A stretch of DNA of 64,000 nucleotides from Ranitomeya imitator (Eukaryota). Position numbers and translations under genes: made by a program. Shown here piece after piece: positions 3,745 through 45,449 of this stretch. The notes beneath the pieces were generated by a model. The model had not been told where the DNA came from. It saw nothing but the letters and a program-made list of their open reading frames with translations, and did not search any database. Position 1 is the stretch's first letter; each line of letters opens with the position of its first letter. The stretch covers positions 2,232,001 to 2,296,000 of the forward strand of contig NC_091285.1 in the NCBI RefSeq assembly GCF_032444005.1, written 5' to 3'.

Positions 3745-6700
3745 TATTATTATTATTTATTGTTATAGCGCCATTTATTCCATGGTGCTTTACATGTAAG
3801 GAGGGGTATACATAATAAAAACAAGTACAATGATCTTAAACAATACAAGTCACAACTGGTACAGGAGGAGAGAGGACCCTGCCCGCGAAGGCTCACAATC
3901 TACAAGGGATGGGTGAGAATACAGTAGGTGAGGGTAGAGCTGGTCATGCAGCGGTTTGGTCGATCGGTGGTTACTGCAGGTTGTAGGCTTGTCGGAAGAG
4001 GTAGGTCTTCAGGTTCTTTTTGCAGGTTTCGATGGTAGGCGAGAGTCTGATGTGTTGTGGTAGAGGGTTCCAGAGTAGGGGTGATGCGCGCGAGAAATCT
4101 TGTATATGATTGTGGGAAGAGGAGATAAGAGCTGAGTAGAGAAGATCTTGTGAGGATCGGAGGTTGCGTGTAGGTAAGTACTGGGAGATGAGGTCACAGA
4201 TGTATGGAGGAGACAGGTTGTGGAAGGCTTTATACGTCATGGTTAGGGTTTTGTACTGGAGTCTCTGGGCAACGGGGAGCCAGTGAAGGGATTGATAGGG
4301 GGAGAAGCTGGGGAATAGCGGGGGGGACAGGTGGATTAGTCAGGCAGCAGTTTAGAATAGATTGGAGGGGTGTGCGAGTGTTAGAGGGGAGGCCACAGAG
4401 CAGGAGGTTGCAGTAATGAAGGCGAGAGATGATGAGGGCATGGACTAGGGTTGCAGATTCTTGGTTGAGGAATGAACAGATTCGTGAAATATTTTTGAGT
4501 TGAAGTTGGCAGGAAGTGGAAAGGGCTTGGATATGTGGTTTGAAGGAGAGATCAGCGTCAAGGATTATCCCGAGGCAGCGAGCTTGTGGGACTGGGGAGA
4601 GTGGGCAGCCGTTTACCGTAATGGATAGGTTCGTTGGGGGGGGTCGCGTGAGATGGGGAAAAGATGATGAATTCTGTTTTGTCCATGTTAAGTTTCAGAA
4701 ATCTAGCGGAGAAGAAGGAGACGCTGAATGTCCGGTCTGTTAGGTATGATGAGATCCAAAATAGGGCCAAGTCTATGATGCCAAGGGATGAGAGGGTCTG
4801 TAATAATAGGGAATGGTCCTCTGTGTCAAAGGCAGCCGACAGGTCCAGGAGGAGGAGAGAGTAGTGTCGCTTGCTCTTGGTGGATAAGAGGTCATTGGTG
4901 ACCTTAGTTAGGGCAGTTTCAGTGGAGTGGTGTGACCAGAAGCCAGATTGTAAGCAGTAGAAGAGGGAGCAAGAAGAGAGATGGGAGGACAGTTTAAGAT
5001 AGACGTGTTGTTCCAGTAGCTTGGAGGCATAGGGGAGAAGTGATATAGGGCATTAGCTAGATACAGAGGATGGGTCAAGAGAGGGCTTTTTGAGGATAGG
5101 TGTGATGGAGGCATGTTTAAAGCTTGAGGGGAAAACACCAGTTGTTAGTGATAGGTTGAAGAGATGGGTTAGGGTTGGGATGAAGACTGTGGTGAGGTTT
5201 GGGATGAAGTGGGATGGTATTGGGTCAAGTGCACAGGTAGTGAGATGTGATCTTGAGAGTAGAGTGGAGAGTCGATCTTCTGTAATGGTGGAGAAGTTGG
5301 TTTTGGAGGTGGAGGGCTCGGAAGTCGGGACGAAGGGCTCTGGGGGTTGTTGACCAAAACTGTTTCTGATGTTATCAATCTTCTGCTTGAAAAATGAGGC
5401 AAAGTCTTCAGCTGAGATGAGTGGGGAGGGAGGAGGTGCTGGGGGACGGAGGAGAGAATTGAAGGTGTTGAATAACTGTTTTTGGTTGTGAGACAGGGAG
5501 GATATGAGAGATGAGAAGTAGGTTTGTTTAGCTGTGGCGAGTGTGGTCATGAAAGTAGTAAGGGACTGATTGAAAGCGATGAAGTGCTCGTTGGAGTGGG
5601 ATCTTTTCCATCTGCGCTCAGCAGCCCTGGAAGCTTGCCTCAGTTCTTTGGTCACGCTGGTGTGCCAGGGCTGTCTGTTGATTTTGCGAGCTTGGTATCT
5701 GTAAGTGGGGCAGCAGATTCCAAAGCTACAGCTATTGTGGTGTTATATAGAGCGACAGCGTCATCCGCATTGTGTAAGGAACTTATTTCTGTGAGAGGGA
5801 GGAGGGATTCAGAGAATGAGTGTAGGTCAAGGTGTTTAAGATTTCTGCGAGGTTGTGAAAGTTTGTGGGGTGGGTATTGTGGACATGGAGTGGAGAGGGA
5901 AGAGAATGTGGGAAGGTTGTGGTCAGAGAGAGGAAGAGGTGAGTTAGAGAGGTTAGATAGGGAAAAGAGGCAGGTGAAGATGAAGTCCAGTGTGTGGCCA
6001 TCTTTGTGGGTGGCTGCAGAAGACCATTCAGTGAGGTCGAAGGAGGAAGTGAGAGATAGTTTAGTGGTAGCTGAGAGGGAAGTGTCAATGGGTATGTTGA
6101 AGTCGCCCATGATGATAGTAGGGATGTCTGCGGAAAGGAAATGAAGTAGCCAGGTGGTGAAGTGGTCAAAGGTGGTGGTGGCTGGCCCTGGGGGGCGGTA
6201 GATGACAGCCAGTTGGAGGTTTGAGGGGGAGTAGATGCACACAGAGTGCACCTCAAAGGAAGGGAGGGTAACAGAGGGTGGCAGTGGGATTGGGGTGAAG
6301 GAGCAGGTATCTGACAGGAGAAAACCAACTACTCCGCCATGTTTGCTGCTGGGGTGGGGTGTGTGAGAAAGGTGGAAGCCACCATACGAAAGTGCAGCAG
6401 GATAGGCTGTGTCAGAAGGGGTGAGCCAGGTTTCGGTGATGGCGAGGAAGGAAAGTTTGGTAGTAACAAAAAGATCATGGAAGTAGGAATGCTTGTTGCA
6501 GACAGAGCGAGCATTCCACAGAGCTCCTCTTAGTGGGACTGGGGAAGCGGGGGCTGGGTGAATGGGTATAAGGTTAGAGAAATTTTGATGGAGTGTGGGT
6601 GGGAGGTAGAACTGACTGTGGGGATGTGGTGAGGAGGACCAGGATTTGGAGAGATATCACCAACAGTGAGAAGGAGCAGAGAAAGTGTTAGCAGGTGGGA

Positions 6701-8213: not shown

Positions 8214-10087
8214 ATAGTAACATAGTTAGTAAGGCCAAAAAAAGACATTTGTCCATCCAGTTCAGCCTATATTCCATCATAATAAATCCCCAGATCTACG
8301 TCCTTCTACAGAACCTAATAATTGTATGATACAATATTGTTCTGCTCCAGGAAGACATCCAGGCCTCTCTTGAACCCCTCGACTGAGTTCGCCATCACCA
8401 CCTCCTCAGGCAAGCAATTCCAGATTCTCACTGCCCTAACAGTAAAGAATCCTCTTCTATGTTGGTGGAAAAACCTTCTCTCCTCCAGACGCAAAGAATG
8501 CCCCCTTGTGCCCGTCACCTTCCTTGGTATAAACAGATCCTCAGCGAGATATTTGTATTGTCCCCTTATATACTTATACATGGTTATTAGATCGCCCCTC
8601 AGTCGTCTTTTTTCTAGACTAAATAATCCTAATTTCGCTAATCTATCTGGGTATTGTAGTTCTCCCATCCCCTTTATTAATTTTGTTGCCCTCCTTTGTA
8701 CTCTCTCTAGTTCCATTATATCCTTCCTGAGCACCGGTGCCCAAAACTGGACACAGTACTCCATGTGCGGTCTAACTAGGGATTTGTACAGAGGCAGTAT
8801 AATGCTCTCATCATGTGTATCCAGACCTCTTTTAATGCACCCCATGATCCTGTTTGCCTTGGCAGCTGCTGCCTGGCACTGGCTGCTCCAGGTAAGTTTA
8901 TCATTAACTAGGATCCCCAAGTCCTTCTCCCTGTCAGATTTACCCAGTGGTTTCCCGTTCAGTGTGTAATGGTGATATTGATTCCCTCTTCCCATGTGTA
9001 TAACCTTACATTTATCATTGTTAAACCTCATCTGCCACCTTTCAGCCCAAGTTTCCAACTTATCCAGATCCATCTGTAGCAGAATACTATCTTCTCTTGT
9101 ATTAACTGCTTTACATAGTTTTGTATCATCTGCAAATATCGATATTTTACTGTGTAAACCTTCTACCAGATCATTAATGAATATGTTGAAGAGAACAGGT
9201 CCCAATACCGACCCCTGCGGTACCCCACTGGTCACAGCGACCCAGTTAGAGACTATACCATTTATAACCACCCTCTGCTTTCTATCACTAAGCCAGTTAC
9301 TAACCCATTTACACACATTTTCCCCCAGACCAAGCATTCTCATTTTGTGTACCAACCTCTTGTGCGGCACGGTATCAAACGCTTTGGAAAAATCGAGATA
9401 TACCACGTCCAATGACTCACCGTGGTCCAGTCTATAGCTTACCTCTTCATAAAAACTGATTAGATTGGTTTGACAGGAGCGATTTCTCATAAACCCATGC
9501 TGATATGGAGTTAAACAGTTATTCTCATTGAGATAATCCAGAATAACATCCCTCAGAAACCCTTCAAATATTTTACCAACAATAGAGGTTAGACTTACTG
9601 GCCTATAATTTCCAGGTTCACTTTTAGAGCCCTTTTTGAATATTGGCACCACATTTGCTATGCGCCAGTCCTGCGGAACAGACCCTGTCGCTATAGAGTC
9701 ACTAAAAATAAGAAATAATGGTTTATCTATTACATTACTTAGTTCTCTTAGTACTCGTGGGTGTATGCCATCCGGACCCGGAGATTTATCTATTTTAATC
9801 TTATTTAGCCGGTTTCGCACCTCTTCTTGGGTTAGATTGGTGACCCTTAATATAGGGTTTTCATTGTTTCTTGGGATTTCACCTAGCATTTCATTTTCCA
9901 CCGTGAATACCGTGGAGAAGAAGGTGTTTAATATGTTAGCTTTTTCCTCGTCATCTACAACCATTCTTTCCTCACTATTTTTTAAGGGGCCTACATTTTC
10001 AGTTTTTATTCTTTTACTATTGATATAGTTGAAGAACAGTTTGGGATTAGTTTTACTCTCCTTAGCAATGTGCTTCTCTGTTTCATT
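8214..10087 (-). mobile_element. CR1-clade LINE, 5'-truncated
   Basis: Short octamer-like 3' tail (CATAGTAA CATAGTTA on +), RT ORF, and TAC on both flanks (8211-8213, 10088-10090). Confidence 0.93.
8315..9964 (-). CDS. CR1 reverse transcriptase domain (ORF2 C-terminal part, no endonuclease)
   Basis: Motifs YLDFSKAFD, GVPQGSVLGPVLF and FADD. No stops, and the frame is open upstream to the truncation point near 10087. Confidence 0.93.
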   Translation of the reverse strand: MVVDDEEKANILNTFFSTVFTVENEMLGEIPRNNENPILRVTNLTQEEVRNRLNKIKIDKSPGPDGIHPRVLRELSNVIDKPLFLIFSDSIATGSVPQDWRIANVVPIFKKGSKSEPGNYRPVSLTSIVGKIFEGFLRDVILDYLNENNCLTPYQHGFMRNRSCQTNLISFYEEVSYRLDHGESLDVVYLDFSKAFDTVPHKRLVHKMRMLGLGENVCKWVSNWLSDRKQRVVINGIVSNWVAVTSGVPQGSVLGPVLFNIFINDLVEGLHSKISIFADDTKLCKAVNTREDSILLQMDLDKLETWAERWQMRFNNDKCKVIHMGRGNQYHHYTLNGKPLGKSDREKDLGILVNDKLTWSSQCQAAAAKANRIMGCIKRGLDTHDESIILPLYKSLVRPHMEYCVQFWAPVLRKDIMELERVQRRATKLIKGMGELQYPDRLAKLGLFSLEKRRLRGDLITMYKYIRGQYKYLAEDLFIPRKVTGTRGHSLRLEERRFFHQHRRGFFTVRAVRIWNCLPEEVVMANSVEGFKRGLDVFLEQNNIVSYNY

Positions 10088-31570: not shown

Positions 31571-33725
31571 TATGTAACCAGAGAATGAGGACAATCCTGA
31601 TGTAACTGGAAATGCTGGAGGACAGCCCTGAGGTAGTAAGGGATCCAAGAGAACACCTGGGATGTCAAAGGAAAACAAGGTGGACACAGAGGTAAACAAA
31701 CATTTAGGAGGACACCCCGATGTAACCGGAGATACAAGAGGATGTCCCTGATGTAACTGGAGAACAAGGACAACCCTGATGCCATGGGGATCCAAGAGAA
31801 CACACCTGAGGTAACCAAATATCTATGAGGACAACCCTGAGGTAACAAAACATCCAAGAGGGCACCCAAGTGGTAACCAAAAATTCAGGGCAACGTCCCT
31901 GAAATTTTTAGGTCAGCTCCTTATAAGTCATGGCTGTGTAGGAACTACAAGTCTCACCAAATGGTTATGAGAGTGGGTGCTTGCCGAGATTTTCAGCCCA
32001 AAAAAATGGGCTGAAAGTGCCTCTCTTGGCTTATAGTCATGGAAGGCCGGGGGGGGGGGGGGATTAGGTGGGTGAGTGACGAAGGTCACGTACTCACCTG
32101 CTCCTGGCGCGGTCCCTGCATGTCCCATGGTCTCCGGCACCTTCTTCCTCCGTTCAGCGGTCATGTGGTACCGCTCATTAACCCCTTCATGACCCAGCCT
32201 ATTTTGACCTTAATGACCTGGCCATTTTTTGCAATTCTGACCAGTGTCCCTTTTTGAGGTAATAACTCAAGAACGCTGTCTACTTTCCATCAGCATAATT
32301 TTAGACAACATTTTTTTTTTTCCAAGGAAGTTATAAAGGTTAAAATTTGACCAGCAATTTCTCATTTTTACAACAAAATTTACAAAACCATTTTTTTTAG
32401 GGACCACCTCACATTTGAAGTCAGTTTGAGGGCTCTATATGTCTGAAAATACCCAAAAGTGACACCATTCTAAAAACTGCACCCCTCAAGGTGCTCAAAA
32501 CCACATTCAAGAAGTTTATTAACCCTTCACGTGCTTCACAGCAGAAGCAACATGGAAGGAAAAAAATTAACATTTAACTTTTTAGTCACAAAAATGAACT
32601 TTTAGCAACATTTTTTTTTTTTTATTTTCCCAAGTGTAAAAGGATAAACTGGACCCCGAAAGTTGTTGTACGATACCCCATATGTGGGGGGGGGGGGGAG
32701 AAAATCACTGTTTGCGCTCACAACAGGGCTCGGAAGGGAAGAAGCGCCATTTTACTTTTTGAATGAAAAATTGGCTCCAATTGTTAGCGGACACCATGTC
32801 GCGTTTGGAGAGCTCCTGTGTGCCCAAACAATGGAGCTCCCCCACAAGTGACCCCATTTTGGAAACTAGACCCCCCCAAGGAACTTATCTAGATGCATAG
32901 TGAGCACTTTCAACCCCCAGGTGCTTCACAAATTGATTCGTAAAAATGAAAAAGTACTTTCCAGGAAGTCCCTCCTGACAGCACCACCAGGAGGTTGTCC
33001 TTCTTATCGTTGATAGAGACAGGAAACACAGAAGAGGTTAAATAGCCCCTCCCCCCCTCAGTGTTTTTCCTGTCCCTATCAGGGACAGACGCAGAGGAGC
33101 GTTGGCGCGGCTTACCGTACCGAAGATTCCAATAGCCGGTTGAGCAGGGCTCCCGGAGCGGCTTCATCCCTCTCTTGAGGGCTCTGAACAGCGGAGGACG
33201 CTGACTCCGCAGGATCACGCCGATACCGAGGGAGGTCCCTCAGCGTGGGTTGAGCTTTGTGCTCCCGTCTTCGGCGCACCCCTCTCCAGAGGGCTCTACA
33301 CCTCCAGCTGTACCCGGTCCATGCCGGCGGTGATCGGACCTAAGAGAGCCGCGTCCTCGTGCAGGTCGTGTCCCTGTGCGCGGCGCGTCATCGGGGCGCG
33401 GCGCATCATCGGGGCGCACCGAGTCATCAAGTGCGCCGCGTCGCGCGCCACAGCGCTAAGCGGCCTGTTGACTTCCGGTGACGTTCCTGGGCAGTGGACC
33501 TCGTGGTTATGGACGGGGACGCCGAAAGAAGCACAACCTTTGACTGTGATATGCAGCCCGGTGGGGGTTCCCGCCCATGGATGAGTGGGTGTTCCTGGAA
33601 CCCGCAGTCATCAGGAAGAGATCACCTGCAGCTGAGCTCAGAAGGAGGACGAGTCAGATGATTTGAAGGCAGGTAAGATAACCTATTTAACCTCAAACAC
33701 CTGACAGCACACTGATCCTATAGAG

Positions 33726-35115
33726 ATGGAGGGTGCAGATCGTCCAGATATCCAGTCCTCAGAGCTCGCCCCTGTACATGTAAGTTATACATAAGGGGAT
33801 CGCCTCACATCGCCAGTCACACACAAGCTATATAGCGCTTCCGTATCTTTTTCAGGATAAAGAAGCGTCTAAGTGTCCAGCAACAGTCCAAAAACGCAAG
33901 ACGAGTAAATGCCCTCTATGCTCTAATAGACTGCCAGAAGGACATACGAAGAAAGTGTGTGATGGCTGTATGGCAGGACTGCTTAAAGGAGAGCAGGCCT
34001 CCTTTATGGACAGTATCACAACTATGATCAGGGAGGAAGTACAGTCCACAGTATCGGCACAAATACCAGCCAAATCCCCCCACCCTAAAAGACCTAGGTG
34101 GGAACAGGATCTTAGTTCAGAAGAGGGTGAGCTTTCAGCTTACTCCATATCTGACTCCATGGAAGGCGAATGCTCTCCAAATGTCCTCCCAGAAGAAAGA
34201 AATAAATATCTATTCTCTTCTGAGCACACGGACACACTACTGCAGGCCGTTAGAAATACCATGAAGGTAGAAGACGCCACAGAACCCCTTACGGTCCAAG
34301 ACGAGATGTTTGGCGGGCTCAGAGCTCGCAGGAACAGAGTTTCCTGTGAATCACTATATTCAACAAATGATCTTGGAAGAATGGGCCGATGTAGGGAAGA
34401 AACTAGTAGTCCCAAGAGACTTTAAATATTGTTTATCTTTTGATCCAGAAGAGACCAAAATTTGGGAATCTGTACCTACAGTGGATATACCTATAGCCAA
34501 GGTCTCAAAAAAGACCGCCATTCCATTTGAGGATTCCTCGGGTCTCAAAGACCCTATGGACAAAAGATCGGAAGATCTCCTCAAGATGGCCTGGGAAGCT
34601 TCAGCCACCATCATGAAAACAAATATTGCGGCCACCTCAGTTGCCAGATCAATGTCGCTGTGGGTAGAAAAATTAAAAACCCAGATAAATAATAAGACTT
34701 CCAGAGATAAAATCTTGAAGACTTTACCACTCCTGAGGATGGCGACCAACTTTATGGCCAATGCTTCGGCAGAATCAGTCCGATTCTCTGCAAGAAACAA
34801 CGCTTTATCTAACGCAGCAAGAAGAGCTCTATGGCTCAGATCATGGTCGGGTGATACGCAGTCAAAAAATAAACTGTTCAATACCCTTCTCTGGCTTTCA
34901 TGTCTTTGGTCCAGTATTGGACGAATTGCTTGAGAAAGCAGCAGATAAGAAGGGCTTCCCTGAAGAAAAACCAAAGAACACACCGTCCTTTCGTCGGACT
35001 CGGTCCCATCCTAGACAATAGAGGGAAAGGTAAAGGCGGAAGATGAAGCTACCCGAAAGGGGGTAGAGGCAGAGGTACCTTTCAGGATCAGAAGTCAAGA
35101 GCCAACAAACAATGA
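33726..35115 (+). pseudogene. DIRS A ORF1 (gag-like) with predicted intron 33780-33855
   Basis: Spliced translation MEGADRPDIQSSELAPVH|DKEASK...CPLC-x12-CDGC...MILEEW...PTVDIPIAKVSKKTAIPFED. Frameshifts near 34340 and 34880. Confidence 0.8.
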
Positions 35116-36261
35116 CGCCAACTTAGTGGGTGGAAGGCTTCAGTACTTCCTATAGGGTTGGAAAAACATCACGCAAAACCCATGGATCTTAAGTTTGATA
35201 GAACGGGGGTACAAAATAGAATTCAGCCAAACACCTCCCAGAAGATTTTGCCTAACTCAGACCCAGTCATTATCAGTTCATCAGAGACTTCTAAAGGATA
35301 TTCAGGAACTTATCCAGACAAAAGCCATCATTCCGGTACCCCATTCCAGGAGGTTCAAAGGACATTATTCAAGTCTGTTCTCCATAAAGATACCAGGCGG
35401 GGAATACCGTACGATTATAAACCTGAAGCCTTTAAATCTATCAGTAGCTTACAAACAGTTCAAGATGGAATCCGTCAAGACTAATACCTCTAATCCAGAA
35501 GGGATCAGTAATGAGCACATTAGATCTAAAAAGTGCCTACTATCAGGTTCCCATCTCCGCTCCACACCAACAGTATCTCAGATTCGCCATAAAAGACCGA
35601 GATCACATTCTACATTATCAGTTCACGTGCCTACCATTCGGTCTCTCATCTGCTCCCAGAATATTCACCATGGCGGAGGTGATGGCCTTTTTAAGAGAAA
35701 GAGATCATCATCCCTTATCTGGACGACATCCTGCTTATAGCAGACTCTCCTCAACAGATGGAGCAGAACTTAACAACGATGTCACTCTTAAAAAGCCTAG
35801 GATGGCTAATATATCTAAAAAAAATAGGTATTAAGCTTACCGTTAATTATGTTTCCAGGAGTCCATACTGACAGCACCCTGGAGGACGTCGTCCTCCCCC
35901 TTGTTGGGACAGGAAACACACGAGAGTTCAAAAGGGCATGTCCCACCCCCAATCCTCAGTGTTGTAACAAGAACCACATCATAGAAATGCAGAAAAGACT
36001 TTTAATAGAAAGTAAATATATACATCAACTTGTCAGAAAACATATTTCCTCATATGTCAAATATAATATGCAATACATTTTATGCCAGAAACATAATACA
36101 TCTTATGTCAGGCTACATACATAGAGGATAACAGTATTACAGGGAGGGAACTACCAGTGCTGTCAGTATGGACTCCTGGAAACATAATTAACGGTAAGCT
36201 TAATACCTATTTTCCAGGACGTCCCTCCTGACAGCACCCTGGAGAGTACCAAAGCACCTCC

Positions 36262-37300
36262 TTAGGGTGGGATTACCGCCTGGAGAACCTTTCTCCCAAA
36301 TGCAGTATGTTGACCAGACAGAACATCAAGTTTATAGTGTCTACAAAATGTATTAGCACTAGCCCAAGTAGCTGCTTTACAGATCTGTTCAAGAGAGGCA
36401 CCTGCTCTCTCAGCCCAAGAAGTAGCTATCCCTCGAGTAGAATGTGCGTGGAGACCCCTTGGAGGAGGGAGCCCTTCAGACTGATAAGCCTCAGAGATCA
36501 CCGAAGTGATCCAACGAGCAATAGAGGCCCTTTTTCCCTTATTCTTCCCTCCAAATAAAACAAACAGATTTGGGTCGATACGCCACGAGTTGGTGGCTGC
36601 TAGGTAGTCTAGAACTGCCTGCCTGACGTCGAGGGAATGAAGAGCTCTTTCTTTCTCATTAGCCGGATTATCACAGAAGGATGGTAACACAATTTCCTGA
36701 TTTCTGTTTTTAACTGATCCCACCTTTGGAACAAAGGAGGGATCCAATCTAAGGATTAGACTATCTTCTCTAATCTGAAGGTAAGGGTCCCTGGTGCACA
36801 GGGCCTGGATCTCCCCCACTCTCTTAGCTGTAGTAATTGCCACTAAAAATGCTGTTTTACGTACTGGAATGGGCATACTATCGGCCGAGGCGTAAACATT
36901 TTTACAGAGGAATCTGAGGACCAGATTAAGGTCCCAGGATGGCGACATTTGTCTAATGGTAGGGCGCAACCTCTGGGTGGCTCTGATAAATCTAACTATC
37001 CACGGGTGGGATGCTAGGGGATAGTCGAGAAAAGAGCTAAGTGCCGAGATCTGCACTTTCACAGTGCTTGGTTTGAGACCTTTGTCAAACCCAGCCTGCA
37101 GGAAATCTAAAATTCTGGGTAAGTTGGGAGCGCCTGCCGTAACCTCAGACCTGCCACCCTCCAGACAGAAACGTTTCCAGATCTTCAAATAAATTGCCGA
37201 TGTGACTGGCTTTCTGCTGGATTTTATAGTAGAGATCACTTGATCTGATAGCCCTCTTGCCTTCAAGATGTTCCTTTCAGGATCCATGCAGAGAGATGGA
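36262..37300 (-). CDS. DIRS B tyrosine recombinase domain (C-terminal part of track ORF 36262-38967)
   Basis: Catalytic-type motifs TAKRVGEI, AHSTR and FCRHY are all present. Confidence 0.88.
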
Positions 37301-37481
37301 GATTCTCTGGACTCGGGTGGTACACCGGACCCTGGTGGCTTACATCTGCTCTGAGAGGAAGCTCTACTGGGCTCTCTATTGCCAGATCCACCAAGAGAGA
37401 ACCAGCTCCTTCTCGGCCAAAATGGTACAATCAATATGACTCGAGCACGATCCTCTTTGATTTTTCTGAGAACAGCTGGAA

Positions 37482-39015
37482 TCAGCGCAAGAGGCGGGAA
37501 TGCGTAGGAGAGAGGTTCTCTGGATCCTGGAACATCTCCTGATTGAGTTCCCACTCTGTTGCAAACACCCGTCTCCTGCTCAGATAATCTGCAATGACGT
37601 TCTGCGAGCCTTCTAAGTGGATTGCCGAGATGGATAGAACCGAATTTTCTGCCCAACGGAATATTCTTCCCGCAAGCTCCTGAAGCGGATAGTGTCTTGA
37701 GCCTCCCTGATGCTTCAGGAAAGACACCGTTGTAACGTTGTCGGATAGTATCCTGATATGACAATTTCTGAGGGTGTGTCGGTTCCTTCTTAACCCCTCC
37801 CAGACGGCATACAACTCTTTGAAGTTGGAGGAGCTGTGAACGACATCTGCTGGCCACCTCCCTTGTAGGATCCTGCCCTTTAGGTGGGCTCCCCAGCCCC
37901 AGGCATCTGTAGTTACCACCACATAGGGATTGGTAGACCATAACACCCCGACTCTTAGCTTCTCTGGTTGATTCCACCAGAGTAGAGATCTGCGTACTGG
38001 ATACGTCAGCCTTAAAGAACTGTCCAGAGAAGACTGACGACGGTCCCATCTGGAAAGGATTAACCTTTGCAGAGGTCTTGAATGGAACTGAGCCCATCTT
38101 ACACACGGTATGCAAGCCATCATCAGACCTAGTACCTTCATGGCCGTTCTTATTGATGTTCTGCATTCTAATAGGAGCCTGATCTGGATCCGGATTGCCT
38201 CCAACTTGTTCTCGGGTAGCAGGGATATCCTGTTTCTCGAATCCAGACATACTCCCAGGAAGGTCTTTTTGCACTCCGGAGTCAGGTCGGATTTCTGCCA
38301 GTTTATGATCCATCCTAACCGCTCCATCACTGACACAGATCGGTTCCTGTGATCTGACAGAATCTCTTGTGTACTTGCGATCAGGAGAAAATCGTCTAGA
38401 TATGGGACTATCTTGATCCCCTGGCTTCTCAGGAAAGCGACAATTTCTGACACCAGCTTTGTAAACACACGAGGTGCTGAGGCAAGCCCAAACGGAAGGC
38501 ACTGGAACTGGTAGTGACAGGTCCCGGACGGCAGCACCACCGCAAACCTCAGAAGTTTCTGAGATGATGGGTGAACAGGGACCTGATAATAGGCACTCTT
38601 CAGGTCGAGAGTGCACATCACAGCGTCCCGATCTATTAGGAGGATTGCAGAGCGAATGGACTCCATGCGAAACCTCTTGTACTTGACCCAGGCATTTAGA
38701 GGTTTCAAATTTATTATTGTGTGCGAGTCGCCGGAAGGCTTCATTATAGAAAATAGGGAAGAGTAGTGACCCCGACCTACTTCTAGTGGTGGAACTGGAA
38801 TTATGACCTCTGAGGAAAGCATGTCCTCTAGGTCTAACATCATGGAAGAGTTTTGCATGACCATCGTAGGAACGATGTATCTGTCCGGAGGATGGGAGGA
38901 AAGCTCGATGCTGTAACCTTCTGACACAGTCCGAAGAACCCATTGATTCTGGGTGACTCGGGCCCAATTCTCCACAAAGTGGCGGAGCCTTCCCCCTATA
39001 AGGGTGGCGTCATTG
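37482..39015 (-). CDS. DIRS B RT/RNase H (ORF2); ends early because of a deletion in the MT domain
   Basis: LDLKSAYYQVP, LPFGLASAPRVF, YLDD, TTDA, ELYAV, SDN and ADYLSR. Confidence 0.88.
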
Positions 39016-40439
39016 TGTCTTAGGCTTTGAGGATGGGCTAAAGAAGAAACTCCTGTTTCTATTGCCCTTGTTACGGAAACCTCTACCGAATCCTCTATTG
39101 GATCTACCCCCTCTGTAATCGGACTGTCTCCTGAAGGGAAAACCTCTCCGAAAGGACTGGCCCTTTTTTGGTTTGCCCTCTGGAAAACCTTTTTTTTTTT
39201 TTTATCAGAGGCTGACTAAGATAGTATCTAGAGAAGGCCCGAAAACTCTCGCCCCTGAGAAAGGAATAGAGCATAATTTGGTTTTTGAGGCATTATACCC
39301 CGACCAGGATCTTAGCCAGACAGCCCTTCTAGCCGCATTGGATAAGGAACCATTTCTAGCTGAAAACCTGACTGATTCAGCAGTCATGTCAGATAGGAAG
39401 GCCGTGGCAGATTTCATGATAGGAAGGGAGCTTAATATATCAGCCCTGGGGGTCTTATTGGATAGGTGTTCCTCCAATTGACCCATCCAAAGGTACATAG
39501 ACCGAGCTACCGAGGTAGCTGCTATGTTGGTCTTAATTAGGGCTGCGGAAGATTCCCAAGCCCTTTTTAGCAGTATGTCGGCTTTCCGATCCATGGGATC
39601 GCGCAGATTTGAAGAGTCCTCAAATGGTATGGCTGTCTTTTTAGCAACCTTTGCCACAGGAACATCCACTTTGGGGATCTCCTCCCAAAGTTTGACTATT
39701 TCTGGCTCAAAAGGTAAGCGAGCTTTGAAGTCCTTAGTCAAAACCAGCCGACGTTCTGCCTCCTTCCACTCCTCCAGTATCATGGCCTTGATATGCTCGC
39801 TTACTGGGAAGACGTCTGCCTACGTGACATAAGTCCCCTAAACATCAGATCCTGTCTGGATTGAGGCTTGGATGTCTCCTCAATCTGCATCGTGCTCCGC
39901 ACCGCCTGCACAAGTTCATTTGTATCCTCAGCCTGGAAGAGGTATTTTCTCTGGTGGTCCTGACTCCCTGAAGGAAGTTCCCCTTCCTCTTCAGAGGTGA
40001 AGTTATCAGAGGCAGACAGGTCCTCAGAGCTATACTCTGGCTCTCTCAAGTCTCGTTCCCGTCTGGCTCTCTTGCGGCTGGGAACCGGGCTGGACCTCTC
40101 CACAATACTGGACAAAGAAGCCTGAACTTCTTCCCGTATTAGGGACCTCATCTCTGACAGAAGTGTCGGCTGTTCATCCCTCATAACCTTGGAAGTGCAA
40201 TCTGCACACAAGGTTTTAGCATGAGTGTCCGGGAGCTTTACGTTGCATATGGGGCATCTATAGGATTTCCTAGATGATTTGCCGGACTTCTTAACTTGAG
40301 CAGGGGGGGCAGCGGGGGTTCCCTTATCCTTAAAAGACATAAGATAGGAAGAAGTAATGGGATACCTGAGTATATGTGCGTGGATAGGGGGGACAGCGCT
40401 ATGCGCACTCACCCCTTCCTCCGCTGGTGCGCCTTCCAT
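39010..40439 (-). pseudogene. DIRS B ORF1 (gag-like) with predicted intron 40412-40329
   Basis: MEGAPAEEG|DKGTP...CPIC-x12-CADC...MILEEW...PKVDVPVAKVAKKTAIPFED. Frameshifts near 39830 and 39200. Confidence 0.82.
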
Positions 40440-41068
40440 GACGATCCTGAGCAGGTCCCCGCAGCGTCCACGCTGGATTAGGAGCGATTCAGCTGCTTGT
40501 GCGTCCCACGCTGGAAGTGACGTCCCACCGGAAGTGACGGTAACAGATGCCGCGAAACCGGAAGTGACGCGGTTCCCCGGGACTTCCGCTAGAAGACGCT
40601 CTGCCAGACGCCGCACCGCTCTGGATGCCGCGCCGCATGGAACCGCGTAGCGGCCGAGAGCCTCCCCCCGGAAGGAGCGGCCCACAACAGGAACTCGCCC
40701 TTCCTGTTCTTTGGAGCAGAGGGACCCCCCTCTGGAGGGTTTCTGCCCTGAGCCTCTTGACAGGGGGAAGGGTATTGGACGAGCCGCACGATCCCCGAGC
40801 ACCGGTAAGCTAGCGCAGCTTCTCTCGTGTGTCCCTTGCAGGGACAGGAAAAACACTGAGGATTGGGGGTGGGACATGCCCTTTTGAACTCTCGTGTGTT
40901 TCCTGTCCCAGCAAGGGGGAGGAGGACGTCCTCCAGGGTGCTGTCAGGAGGGACGTCCTGGAAAAAAAAAAAAATCAGACCTCAGACCCGAAACAAGGAA
41001 ATTATTCCTCGGAGTGATCCTAGACTCAGTTCAGGAACATAAGTACCTCCCGCATCACAAGCAGGACT

Positions 41069-41111
<43 letters not shown>

Positions 41112-41142
41112 TTCCTAACATTACAGAAGCAAAAGCAAACAT

Positions 41143-41563
41143 TAGGCTTGAACGAAACGGATCGGACAAATTCAAAAGTCGCCGACTTTCGGCAAAGTCG
41201 GGTTTCATGAAACCCGACCCTAGTGTGGGATCGGTCATGCGGTCGGCGATCTTTGCGCCAAAGTCGCGTGTCGTATGACGCATTTAGCGCCATTTTTCAG
41301 CCAATGAAGGAGCGTGGGCAGAGTGATGACATGGGTCTTAGGGGTGTGCCTATCGCCATCTTATCGCTTGTGTGCTGTAGTAGCGATTTGCAATGTGTAA
41401 CACCAGCTTTTCGGAGAGAGGGAGAGAGAATTTTGACTTGCATTGGGTTTCGCGTTTCGGTTGAACCCCGACTTTACGTGATAATCGGCCGATTTCACTC
41501 GACTTTTGAGAAAGTCGGGTTTCGCGAAACCCGACTCGATCTTAAAAAAGTCGCTCAACCCTA
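41143..41563. mobile_element. hAT-type MITE in the DIRS A RT
   Basis: TAGGCTTGAACG ... CGCTCAACCCTA with an 8-bp TSD GCAAACAT/GCAATCAT. Removing it restores the RT frame. Confidence 0.85.
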
Positions 41564-42769
41564 GCAATCATCCATAAGAAAGGCCATGTGGGTACTGGGC
41601 TTAATGACATCCTGCGTTTCCAGTGTTTAGTGGAGTCAATATCACTCAAGACCCCTGCGGCAAGAAATTCTCTCACGTTGGGAAGGCAGAGATGTAACCC
41701 TGGACAAAAAAGTGTGCTTATCCCTAGACGCAAAGCGTTCACTGTCATGGTGGGATTCTATCACCAATTTGAGATATTCCAAAAAAACGGTGCCAATAAT
41801 CTTTAGGTGACCTTAAAGGCGACCATGTGATAAAGGCCGGAGTCCGGCCGAAACGTCAAAACTGTCGCTTCACCTACCACCGTAAATAAAATTTACTCAC
41901 TTGAAAGCATACTTTTCCATTGAGTGCAGTGATTCTATATCTATTTTGCACTGTCATGGTGGACCATAACAAAAAATCTCGAGAAAGGAAAGCCTTGGAG
42001 AACATCTCCGTGTATAAGAATCACTACAGATGCAAGCCTCAGCAGCTGGGGAGCCCACATAGAAGAAAACTACTTTCAAGGGACTTGGCCTGCATCAGTA
42101 TGAAGCAGGTCTTCAAATTACAGAGAACTCAGGGCAGTCTGGGAAGCCTTAAGAACATTCCAGGAAAGATTAAAAGGCCAACACATCCGTGTCTTTTCGG
42201 ACAATTCAACGACAGTAGCCTACTTCATCAAGGTGGTCCAAAACATCGTTACCTACAGGACCTGTCAGATACAATATTCTCCTGGGCAGATCAATAACGG
42301 CAGTTCATCTAAGAGGCACCGAAAACCAGGTAGCCGACTTTCTAACCAGACAGAAATTATGTCCCACAGAATGGTCCTTAAACGAGGAAATCTTCCTCCA
42401 ACTAACCCAACTTTGGGGCTTCCCGAAGGTAGATCTGTTCGCCTCAAGGAAGAATACAAAGACACAAAGATTCTTTTCGCTGAATCCAGGAGACAGACCA
42501 TCAGGAATAGATGCACTGGCTCAAAACTGGGACATGAAATTGGCATACGCTTTTCCTCCGTTGGCTCTAATACTGAGGGTATTGAGAAAGATCCAGGAGA
42601 GCCAGACATCAGTTATCTTGATAGTCCCATACTGGCCCAAAAGGAGATAGTTTCCTCTACTGAAATGGATGTCCTTGGAGGATCCAATCCATCTACCAGC
42701 AGTGCCAGACCTGTTATCTCAGGGCCCCCTAGTTCATCAGAACCCGGGTCTACTACAATTAACAGCATG

Positions 42770-44008
42770 GATCCTGAAAAAGAGATTCTAAGATCAAAAG
42801 GCCTCTCAGTACCAGTCATTGCCACTATCCAAAACAGTAAGAAAACTGTAACTTCCGCAATATACAGGAAAATATGGAAAAAGTTCTGCTCCCAGAGTAC
42901 GGCTCCTGTATCGGTCTCTCAAGGACCAGACATTCCAAAAATTCTAGACTTTCTCCAGTTGGGTTTTGATAAAAGACTAAGGCCTAGTACATTGAAGGTA
43001 GAAATATCAGTCCTCAGTTCCTTCTATGACTTCCAGCTAGCCTCCCATCCATGGATAGTGAGGTTTGTCAAGGCCATTCAGAGACTTAGGCCTACAATTC
43101 GCAGTTCAGTGCCTCCCTGGGATCTAAACCTGGTCTTGAATGAACTCTGTAAGGAACCATATGAGCCACTAGCTCAAGCAGATTTAAGAACTGTAACCTT
43201 TAAAGCTCTCTTCCTAGTGGCAATAACTTCAGTGCAACGTATCAGTGAGATCCAATCTTTATCCATTAAGGATCCATACTTAAAGGTCCAGGATGATTGT
43301 ATCATCCTTAACCTTCGTCCAGCTGAGTAGGTACAATTGTAACTATTCCGTTTTAAAATTGCAATAACTTTTTTTTTTTCGAAAAGCCGTAGAGGGCTGA
43401 AATTTTGTGACATCTCTGCAGTTTTGGTCCAGAATATATTGGCCAAATTTCAATAAAATATATATGAAGGTACAATTGTACCTCTGCAGCCTGTTAACGT
43501 AAAATTATGCAGCCTGACGTAGGTTAAACTAGACCCTGGGTTCCTTCCTAAAGTAGTCTCTGACTTCCATAGAAGTCAAGAAATTGTTCTGCCTACATTC
43601 TGCCAAAACTTCAGTAACGTCAAAGAGCAATCTCTTCACGCTTTAGATGTCAAAAGGACAATTCTACACTACTTAGAGATCACAAATGATTGGAGAATTG
43701 ACTCCAACCTCTTCATCCAGATGGCTGGAAGAAATAAAGGAAAGAAAGCATCCAAAGCTACTCTAGCTAGATGGATTAAGTCTACCATCACGGCAGCCTA
43801 CATCTCGGCAGGGAGAACCCCTCCAGAAAGCCTCAAGGCACATTCGCTGAGAGCAATCTCAGCCTCATGGGCAGAAAGCTCCGGGGTTTCTATGGATCAA
43901 ATATGCAAAGCTGCAACATGGTCAAGAGCAAATACTTTCTGTAGACATTATAAATTAGATTTAACAGTAAACAGACTACATTTGGGAGGAAAGTCCTCCA
44001 AGCTGTAA
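42770..44008 (+). pseudogene. DIRS A tyrosine recombinase, interrupted by a TTAA MITE
   Basis: VQRISEI, AHSLR and FCRHY. Removing the MITE gives IILKLDPGFLPKVV. Confidence 0.88.
43312..43522. mobile_element. 211-bp piggyBac-type MITE
   Basis: TTAA|CCTTCGTCCAGCTG ... CAGCCTGACGTAGG|TTAA. Confidence 0.8.
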
Positions 44009-45449
44009 TCCCGCCCTAAAAAATAGGAGTTATTTGGTATTTCTCCTGGTGGTGCTGTCAGGAGGGACGTCCTGGAAAGTAGGAATTAGTGCTACTGGTA
44101 AGATTGTTTCCAGGAGTCCATCATGACAGCACCCCTTATATACCCTCCCTTGAGTTCCTGTCTGATATGTGATGTAAACATGTGTAGAGAGGAATTTCAA
44201 TAAAATAGAGTTGCATCCATCCAGGTGTGGTACTTGAAAAAAATCACTGAGGGGTGGAAGTGGGGAGGGGCTATTTAACCTCTTCTGTGTTTCCTGTCCC
44301 TATCAAGGATAAGAAGGACAACCTCCTGGTGGTGCTGTCATGATGGACTCCTGGAAACAATCTTACCGGTAGGACCAAATTCCTACTTTTTTTTTTTTTT
44401 TTTAACCCCCAAATTTTTTAGCCTCAATTTTTTTGTTTTCACATGGGTAACAGCATAAAATGGATCCTACAATTTGTTGGGCAATTTCTCTTGAGTACAC
44501 CGATGCCTCATATGTGGGGGTAAACCACTGCTTGGGCACACGGCAAGGCTCAGAAGGAAATGAGCGCCATTTGACTTTTTGAATGAAAAATTAGCTCCAA
44601 TCGTTAGCGGTCACCATGTCGCATTTGGAGAGCCCCTGTGTGCCTAAACATTGGAACTCCCCCACAAGTGACACCATTTTGGAAACTATACCCCCCCCCC
44701 CCCCCCCCCCCCCCAAGGAACTCATCTAGATATGTGATGAGCACTTTGAACCCCCAAGTGCTTCACAGAAGTTTATAACACAGAGCCATGAAAATAAAAA
44801 ATCGTTTTTTCCTCAAAAATGATATTTTTTAGCCCGCAATTTTTTATTTTCACAAGGGTAACACGATAAATTGAAACCCAATAGTTGTTGTCCAGTTTGT
44901 CCTGAGTACGCTGATGCCCAATATGTGGGGTGAACCACTGTTTGGACAAACGTCGGGGCTCGGAAAGGAAGTAGTGACGTTTTGAAATGCAGACTTTGAT
45001 GGAATGCTCTGCGGGCGTCACGTTGCGTTTGCAGAGACCCTGATGTACCTAAACAGTAGAAACCCCAAACAAGTGACCCCATTTTGGAAACTAGACCCCC
45101 CCAATGAACTTATCTAGATGTGTGGTGAGCACTTTGAACCCCCCAGTGCTTCGCAGAATTTTATAACGCAGAGCCGTGAAAATAAAAAAATCTTTTTTTT
45201 CCCCACAAAAATAATTTTTTAGCCATTTTTTTTATTTTTCCAAGGGTAACAGGAGAAATTAGACCCCCAAAATTGTTGTACGCTTATGCTCCATATGTTT
45301 GGGTAAACCACTGTTTGGGCACACGTCTGGGCTCGGAAGGGAGGGAGCAACATTTGACTTTTTGAGTGCAAGATTGGCTGAAATCAATGGTGGCGCCATG
45401 GCGTGATTGGAGACCCCCTGATGTGCCTAAACAGTGGAAACCCCTCAAT

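Follow-up and report, generated by a model that had tools for sequence, protein, structure and literature searches.

Retrotransposons normally lose introns because they are copied from processed RNA, and DIRS elements, which are abundant in frog genomes, replicate in a way that is poorly understood. What, then, is an apparent intron doing at the start of gag in two DIRS retrotransposons, one inserted in the other, in the dendrobatid frog Ranitomeya imitator? The two elements lie in a 64,000-nt stretch of contig NC_091285.1 (positions 2,232,001 to 2,296,000 of the forward strand), hereafter the window, in whose own coordinates they are described; we call them A (plus strand) and B (minus strand). 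An initial annotation of this DNA had noticed a GT..AG unit at the same place in both gag genes and proposed that splicing controls the replication of the elements. We consider it likely that A and B are DIRS1-like tyrosine-recombinase retrotransposons whose gag is split by a U2-type GT-AG intron that works in the manner set out below.

In element A, exon 1 (33726-33779, plus strand) consists of 18 codons for MEGADRPDIQSSELAPVH, begins in the Kozak context GAGATGG, and is followed by a 76-nt intron (33780-33855) with the donor CAT|GTAAGT (33780-33785) and the acceptor CTTCCGTATCTTTTTCAG|GAT, in which TTTTTCAG ends at 33855 and positions -20 to -4 are 82% pyrimidine. Gag exon 2 (33856-34931) starts with GAT AAA and reads DKEASKCP.., with a CxxC..CxxC zinc knuckle from residue 19, a LAP2alpha-type C-terminal part, and frameshifts near 34335-34367 and 34875. 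Left unspliced, the frame of the ATG runs into a TAA 12 nt into the intron, whose length is not a multiple of 3. No ATG precedes exon 2 in its own frame, and its first in-frame Met (residue 39) belongs to the second CxxC of the knuckle; starting downstream would thus cost part of this motif.

Element B, on the minus strand, has a shorter exon 1 (40413-40439; 9 codons, MEGAPAEEG, Kozak context GTCATGG), an 84-nt intron (40329-40412) with the donor GGG|GTGAGT (40412-40407) and the acceptor TATCTTATGTCTTTTAAG|GAT, its TTTTAAG ending at 40329, and a gag exon 2 (39205-40328) that starts with GAT AAG, reads DKGTPAAPP.., and contains the knuckle (residues 25-45), a LAP2alpha domain, and a frameshift near 39783-39810. 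The initial annotation had placed all of this exactly to the base, in A (ATG 33726, GTAAGT at 33780, AG ending at 33855, 76 nt, in-frame TAA) as in B (ATG 40439, MEGAPAEEG, GTGAGT at 40412, AG ending at 40329, 84 nt in frame). It was also right that the two elements are clearly diverged despite their common phase 0 and the DK with which both second exons begin: the amino-acid identity of their Gag proteins is 39% in the N-terminal part and 62% in the C-terminal part.

We collected relatives by word searches, first with the gag of B and then with aligned gag pieces (A1), and compared the DNA behind the matched frog proteins. The comparison set comprises 14 gag 5' ends from at least eight families and six named frog species, namely A and B of the window, loci L001-L008 (L002 twice), L011, L014, and L015. 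The loci collected come from R. imitator (L001, L003, L004, and L005), Dendrobates tinctorius (two copies, L002a and L002b), Ranitomeya variabilis (L006), Anomaloglossus baeobatrachus (L007), Bufo gargarizans (L008-L010), and Engystomops pustulosus (L011-L013), with L014 and L015/L016 being contigs assembled from public sequencing runs (Logan). The nearest named relatives of the compared loci are all anuran.

In all 14 gag 5' ends, a unit of 66-102 nt that runs from GT through a pyrimidine tract to AG occupies one and the same position, upstream of a CxxC-x(10-12)-CxxC knuckle. The donor is GTRAGY in 13 of the 14 copies (GTATTG in L014), the pyrimidine content at -20 to -4 is 71-88% in every copy, 12 copies have a YAG acceptor (AAG in the other two, B and the closely related L001), and the intron is in phase 0 in 13, the frame of the exon 1 ATG joining the gag frame. 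The comparison of copies that the initial annotation had called for thus finds its GT/AG signals kept. The interior of the unit behaves in the opposite way to its ends: between families the intron interiors are 53.5% identical, vs. 51.7% for shuffles and 62% for the next 150 nt of exon 2, and introns can be aligned only in within-family pairs (B/L001, 76%, with exons at 86%; L003/L004, 75%, with exons at 80%). Intron length modulo 3 is 0 in seven copies, 1 in three, and 2 in four.

The first exon, by contrast with the intron interior, is held as protein. It is started by an ATG and spans 9-23 codons (in L003, where the ATG is in an additional exon upstream, 40 codons; L002b has no in-phase ATG), its peptides are conserved, and differences in its length are whole codons. 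One group of peptides includes MEGAPAEEG (B), MEGNMPAKEG (L001), MEGNAPAGEG (L002), MEERNAEEG (L005), and MENRNEEIG (L004), and a second includes MEGADRPDIQSSELAPVH (A), MEDTARPEGTDQLQGH (L006), and MDEDDRSDAGAPAESQGH (L007). The peptide pattern of A and its phase-0 end (..H|GT) are common to the R. variabilis and Anomaloglossus loci, whose peptides MEDTARPEGTDQLQGH and MDEDDRSDAGAPAESQGH form exon 1 of the corresponding RefSeq models. In 12 of the 14 copies, a stop or a frameshift prevents unspliced read-through from the ATG. Wherever the knuckle is intact, no in-frame Met of exon 2 precedes it; we therefore reject a downstream start codon for Gag, an alternative that the initial annotation had raised, since the conserved zinc knuckle, the most conserved N-terminal motif, would be lost.

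We define the full arrangement as an ATG-started open frame in phase 0, a GTRAGY donor, 60-110 nt, a pyrimidine-rich tract with AG, and an in-frame join to gag. Of the 14 natural copies, 12 have it, the exceptions being L002b and L014; in 28,000 shuffles of the 250 nt that precede exon 2, it arose 8 times (about 3e-4 per copy). The unit thus has the donor, the pyrimidine tract with AG, and the restoration of frame upon removal that mark a U2-type intron, and its signals are kept while its interior and length drift. By sequence comparison, frog DIRS families share the position, splice signals, and phase of this intron even where its interior is unalignable, and the unit is almost certainly a genuine intron, family-wide in anuran DIRS.

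Two further candidates lie close to this unit. The initial annotation had suggested a second, 51-nt intron in the 5' untranslated region of A (33673-33723, plus strand); the motifs exist, and the comparison lends them no support, as the span is shorter than all 14 gag introns and the related loci L006 and L007 have the donor-like CAG|GTAA but no acceptor there. Two R. imitator loci of one family have another mini-intron candidate upstream of the gag unit (GTGAGTGCAGC..CTCCACAG; L003, 10017-10091, 75 nt; L004, about 9642-9725, 84 nt), which is in frame with one more ATG exon (MPETK). The RefSeq model of L003 leaves this upstream GT..AG candidate unspliced, from which it follows that the annotation pipeline does not remove every possible intron.

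Gene models place the same intron. Five RefSeq proteins, mapped back to their loci, are each spliced at exactly the gag unit in five species: R. imitator (XP_069606553; L003, 10121-10192, 72 nt), R. variabilis (L006, 3049-3135, 87 nt), Anomaloglossus (L007, 3055-3129, 75 nt), B. gargarizans (L008, 3058-3155, 98 nt), and Engystomops (L011, 3043-3128, 86 nt). At a Xenopus tropicalis locus (L017), a GenBank model contains a 93-nt GTAAGT..TTTCAG intron (4141-4233), and 2 nt separate its end from a candidate gag ATG (MADTALEK..); the model itself uses an upstream ATG in exon 1. A 5' intron beside the gag start thus reaches the pipid frogs, where it may lie in the leader; published descriptions of Xenopus DIRS list three open reading frames (ORFs) and no intron (PMC9210276).

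Which RNA, then, is copied? The B. gargarizans copies L008-L010 lie on three chromosomes and the Engystomops copies L011-L013 at three separate sites on one chromosome; within each trio the copies share 99.5-99.8% identity along about 5 kb, and none of them lacks the intron. Because such near-identical copies all keep it, the RNA that founds new copies must be unspliced, and on this evidence from genomic sequence the reverse-transcribed RNA is the unspliced one. Intronless copies, for which the initial annotation had advised a search, number 0 in the 20 loci compared, a small sample. The reading frames, in turn, argue strongly that Gag is made from spliced RNA. As for the splicing-based control of DIRS replication that the initial annotation had proposed, its foundation holds, in that removal of the conserved intron is needed to join the only available ATG to the knuckle (12 of 14 copies) and the intron is retained in all copies; the control role itself is a step that we infer, and a plausible one.

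The mechanism that we propose would run as follows. The primary transcript would probably begin some 100-200 nt upstream of the ATG, at an internal promoter. Splicing would join the ATG exon to the gag body and allow full-length Gag to be made; in RNA left unspliced, translation from the ATG would end inside the intron or shortly downstream of it in most families, yielding no Gag. The unspliced RNA would be the template for reverse transcription, as every genomic copy, very young ones included, keeps the intron. Splicing would in this way set the transcripts to be translated apart from those to be replicated, and spliced RNA might be kept out of the next generation by the loss of a cis signal together with the intron or, as in Penelope, by the non-expression of intronless progeny.

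Sequence features around the start of gag may bear on both ends of this scheme. In B, three ETS-like GTCACTTCCRG motifs (40511-40568, minus strand) lie 70-130 nt upstream of the gag ATG, where 0.02 are expected. The motif is repeated 70-250 nt upstream of the gag ATG in most related loci, always in the orientation of gag (L001, 12285-12323; L005, 25134; L006, 2773-2805; L007, 2774; L008-10, 2872; L015/16, 364-403), often adjoining a TGACGTCA-like CRE, and these motifs probably belong to an internal DIRS promoter. The gag 5' splice site, for its part, tends to fall in a local hairpin, in the window (40385-40424, minus strand; 33768-33809, plus strand) as well as in L001, L004, L005, and L007. 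The exon-end GGGG pairs with an intron CCCC in B, L001, and L005, and the inverse, CCCCU with AGGGG, is found in A; over the 14 copies the mean z of the hairpin is about -1. The sequence GTAAGTGCGCATAGCGC is present exactly in L001 and L002a, with one base different in B, and as near-variants in L003 and L004, despite introns that are otherwise unalignable. There is a hint, at most, that a splice-site hairpin could tune splicing efficiency and keep splicing incomplete.

Several observations weigh against the proposed mechanism or against its generality. A and B are both dead copies (A is split and has several frameshifts, and B has one frameshift in gag), and neither is expressed as a functional element. 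The acceptor of B, AAG|G, is weak, with an A at -3, and L001 also has AAG. The intron of B is open and in frame, which would allow Gag without splicing; L001, the closest relative of B, has the same signals and an 85-nt intron with a stop, so the open frame of B looks incidental. The distant family represented by L002b has the GT..AG signals but no in-phase ATG and lacks the full arrangement, and in L014 the donor is poor (GTATTG) and the intron is open in frame, so that Gag is again possible without splicing. The five RefSeq models may be partly ab initio predictions. The spliced mRNA carries all other parts of the element, which leaves its not being copied unexplained. Finally, no spliced form of gag appears among about 60 cluster members and representatives of Logan-contig proteins (runs SRR5149381, SRR5149393, and SRR5149508); all members of clusters P0019, P0022, and P0024, together with the representatives P0069 and P0089, read through the pyrimidine tract or start downstream. 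As these runs could be RNA or DNA, such intron-retaining contigs count neither for nor against splicing.

L014 is a contig from SRR5149381 that probably represents an anuran family. Its unit (668-769) combines a perfect TACTAAC branch site with a long pyrimidine tract, and it belongs to a 483-aa ORF1. Here the intron may be turning into coding sequence.

The alternative that survives best accepts that the intron is real and spliced and denies that it acts as a switch: it would be needed for efficient export or translation, by the intron-mediated enhancement that has been proposed for Penelope, intronless progeny would be poorly expressed and die out, and both RNAs might be reverse-transcribed. 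There is precedent for this, as a Penelope reporter without the 75-bp 5' intron gave virtually no expression although its RNA was still made (PMC2377424). The spliced DIRS mRNA, moreover, retains every other cis element, and the intron, with an interior that cannot be aligned between families, shows no identifiable packaging signal. Set against this are the absence of intronless copies from the small sample of loci, the blocked read-through in 12 of the 14 copies, which makes unspliced RNA silent for Gag as a dedicated template would be, and the location of the 5' splice site in a local hairpin, hinting at splicing that is tuned and not maximal. We judge an intron without a switch to be rather unlikely, if still a serious competitor to the partition of transcripts into two pools.

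Far less probable is that the unit is not spliced in vivo, its signals being kept for an RNA structure or as a site at the DNA level, with Gag made from a non-AUG, an internal, or a downstream Met start. The Logan ORFs, all intron-retaining, and the in-frame read-through of B and L014 speak for it, but it is hard to reconcile with GTRAGY, a tract with AG, phase 0, and an in-phase ATG exon that persist around a random interior of drifting length; a start at a downstream Met would lose the conserved zinc knuckle, and independent annotation pipelines place an identical intron in five species. That the unit resembles an intron by chance, or is an artefact of decay in two copies, might be entertained from A and B alone, which are dead and frameshifted and in which the in-frame TAA of A could be mere decay, but this is in effect refuted by recurrence in 12 further copies from the six named species, by the shuffle rate of about 3e-4 per copy, and by retention in intact young copies, and we give it next to no weight. 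The reading that we prefer over all three is thus the one with which we began, an intron that is spliced for Gag and left in place for replication.

The assignment of A and B to DIRS rests on their architecture. Element A (32955-44371, plus strand) is degraded and cut in two by the insertion of B; its inverted terminal repeats (32967-33059 and 44257-44349) are 93 nt long and 94% complementary. With the proteins of B as tblastn queries, its gag is found at 33877-34931, its reverse transcriptase (RT) at 35159-35823 and 40951-42395, and its recombinase region at 42657-43154, the RT being 40-59% identical to that of B, in pieces. The ORF list shows several frameshifts and many short frames in A, which is detectable by tblastn only. 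Element B (35821-40977, minus strand) is nearly intact and sits in the RT region of A, with inverted terminal repeats (35861-35963 and 40852-40954) of 103 nt that are 96% complementary. Pieces of its internal complementary region at 36157-36244 pair with both ends (I4 and I9), and internal pieces complementary to the termini are found for both elements (I3, I4, I5, and I9), as expected of DIRS. The best protein matches are from R. imitator and D. tinctorius, and tblastn found no further DIRS copies within the window.

In B, an ORF at 37482-38975 matches the Pfam family RVT_1 at 8.5e-19, with a weak RT_RNaseH match, and 39205-39783 matches LAP2alpha (PF11560) at 3.8e-12, a domain that reaches 8.4e-19 in the intact relative L004. 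The tyrosine recombinase that DIRS1-like elements have in place of a DDE integrase is less clear: Phage_integrase is matched in B (36265-37401, profile positions 25-165 of 172) with an E-value of 0.033 and in A with 0.076, both below the Pfam cut-off, and HSTRG and RHY motifs are visible in the ORF of B. The Pfam search found no integrase or protease domain. RT with RNase H, inverted terminal repeats with an internal complementary region, and a gag-like ORF1 with a LAP2alpha-type domain are all features of DIRS1-like elements, and such a domain is known in ORF1 of Xenopus DIRS (PMC9210276). The gag frames of A (34335-34367, plus strand) and B (39783-39810, minus strand) both break by small frameshifts within the codons of the same conserved motif, VFPV, at a T/C run. 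We rejected a second gag intron at these breaks, the frameshifts lying inside the VFPV codons and related proteins being uninterrupted there; either independent decay at a slippery spot or a homopolymer assembly error would account for them.

The collection of relatives also bears on annotation in frogs more generally. Among frog RefSeq genes, dozens that bear the name "lamina-associated polypeptide 2, isoforms alpha/zeta-like" are DIRS gag genes, and these are often chimeras with exons of the host; "lamina-associated polypeptide 2-like" is a systematic mis-naming in anuran annotations. If the intron is spliced as we propose, the true start codon would escape descriptions of DIRS gag that are based on ORFs, such as those of the curated Xenopus families, to which three ORFs are ascribed (PMC9210276).

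More broadly, and quite tentatively, the intron at the start of gag could be ancestral and obligatory in anuran, perhaps vertebrate, DIRS1-like elements, partitioning their RNA into a Gag pool and a silent template pool, the reverse of what retroviruses do; this would be an arrangement so far undescribed for tyrosine-recombinase retroelements, and one whose acceptor, already in place ahead of the gag body, would also account for the two captures of DIRS gag as an alternative exon in mammals (LAP2alpha in TMPO and ZNF451). A conserved Gag-gating intron would offer a handle on the balance between translation and reverse transcription, on the nuclear exit of unspliced RNA, and on the marking of templates. 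A native intron is not mentioned in an overview of DIRS1-like elements (PMC3266345), a survey of fungal DIRS and Ngaro elements (PMC3783388), or a study of Xenopus DIRS (PMC9210276), and work on the replication of Dictyostelium DIRS-1, which mentions none either, used an artificial intron marker only (PMC7192593). In the literature searched, which excludes the founding DIRS papers, Repbase, and Dfam, a native DIRS intron is nowhere described, and an earlier description is therefore possible.

How does this intron compare with known cases? Documented intron-keeping retroelements are Penelope-like elements, Ogre, copia, and BARE (PMC2377424, PMC3735527), and the view in the initial annotation that such elements are scattered exceptions was fair. 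The known exceptions (Penelope, Ogre, and copia/BARE) each showed how an element parts its translated from its replicated RNA. A related case concerns host genes. The LAP2alpha exons of mammalian TMPO and ZNF451 are derived from DIRS gag and encode the same domain (PF11560), although they are host exons and not mobile. A splice acceptor has been inferred behind these two domestications (PMC4495291); the acceptor of the gag intron would offer a simple explanation for it and is a candidate for its source.

The Penelope element of Drosophila virilis has a 75-bp intron near its 5' end, with splice sites conserved between diverged copies and kept after transposition (PMC2377424). The DIRS intron is likewise short (66-102 nt), near the 5' end, and retained in transposed copies, the recently transposed ones of B. 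gargarizans and Engystomops among them. Penelope, however, has a telomerase-like RT, a GIY-YIG endonuclease, and no gag, and its intron lies in the promoter and 5' region, whereas that of DIRS lies between the start codon and the gag body; splicing is known in Penelope by reverse transcription PCR and is predicted in DIRS from sequence. The elements studied here, with their DIRS architecture of gag, RVT_1, and recombinase, are not Penelope-like elements, and the Penelope 5' intron is their nearest functional analogue, by a likeness that is functional only.

Ogre, a plant Ty3/Gypsy element, keeps an intron in its genomic copies and splices it from part of its transcripts (Steinbauerova 2008, as related in PMC3735527), but this intron lies between gag-pro and RT of a plant long terminal repeat (LTR) element. 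BARE removes a 104-nt intron from gag, and its spliced RNA is excluded from replication (PMC3735527). In copia, BARE1, and Arabidopsis Ty1/Copia elements, as in DIRS on our reading, splicing decides which transcript makes Gag and replication needs the unspliced RNA. These are LTR elements with an integrase, however, in which the unspliced RNA still encodes Gag-Pol and splicing raises the ratio of Gag to Pol, whereas in most DIRS copies the unspliced RNA would be unable to make Gag. In the logic of separate translated and replicated pools, BARE is nonetheless the nearest analogue. Retroviruses, too, have a major splice donor near the 5' end, in a local hairpin, and their unspliced RNA is the genome. 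That RNA is also their gag mRNA, and splicing serves the downstream genes; in DIRS, where splicing would serve gag and the unspliced RNA would be silent for it, the logic appears to be reversed.

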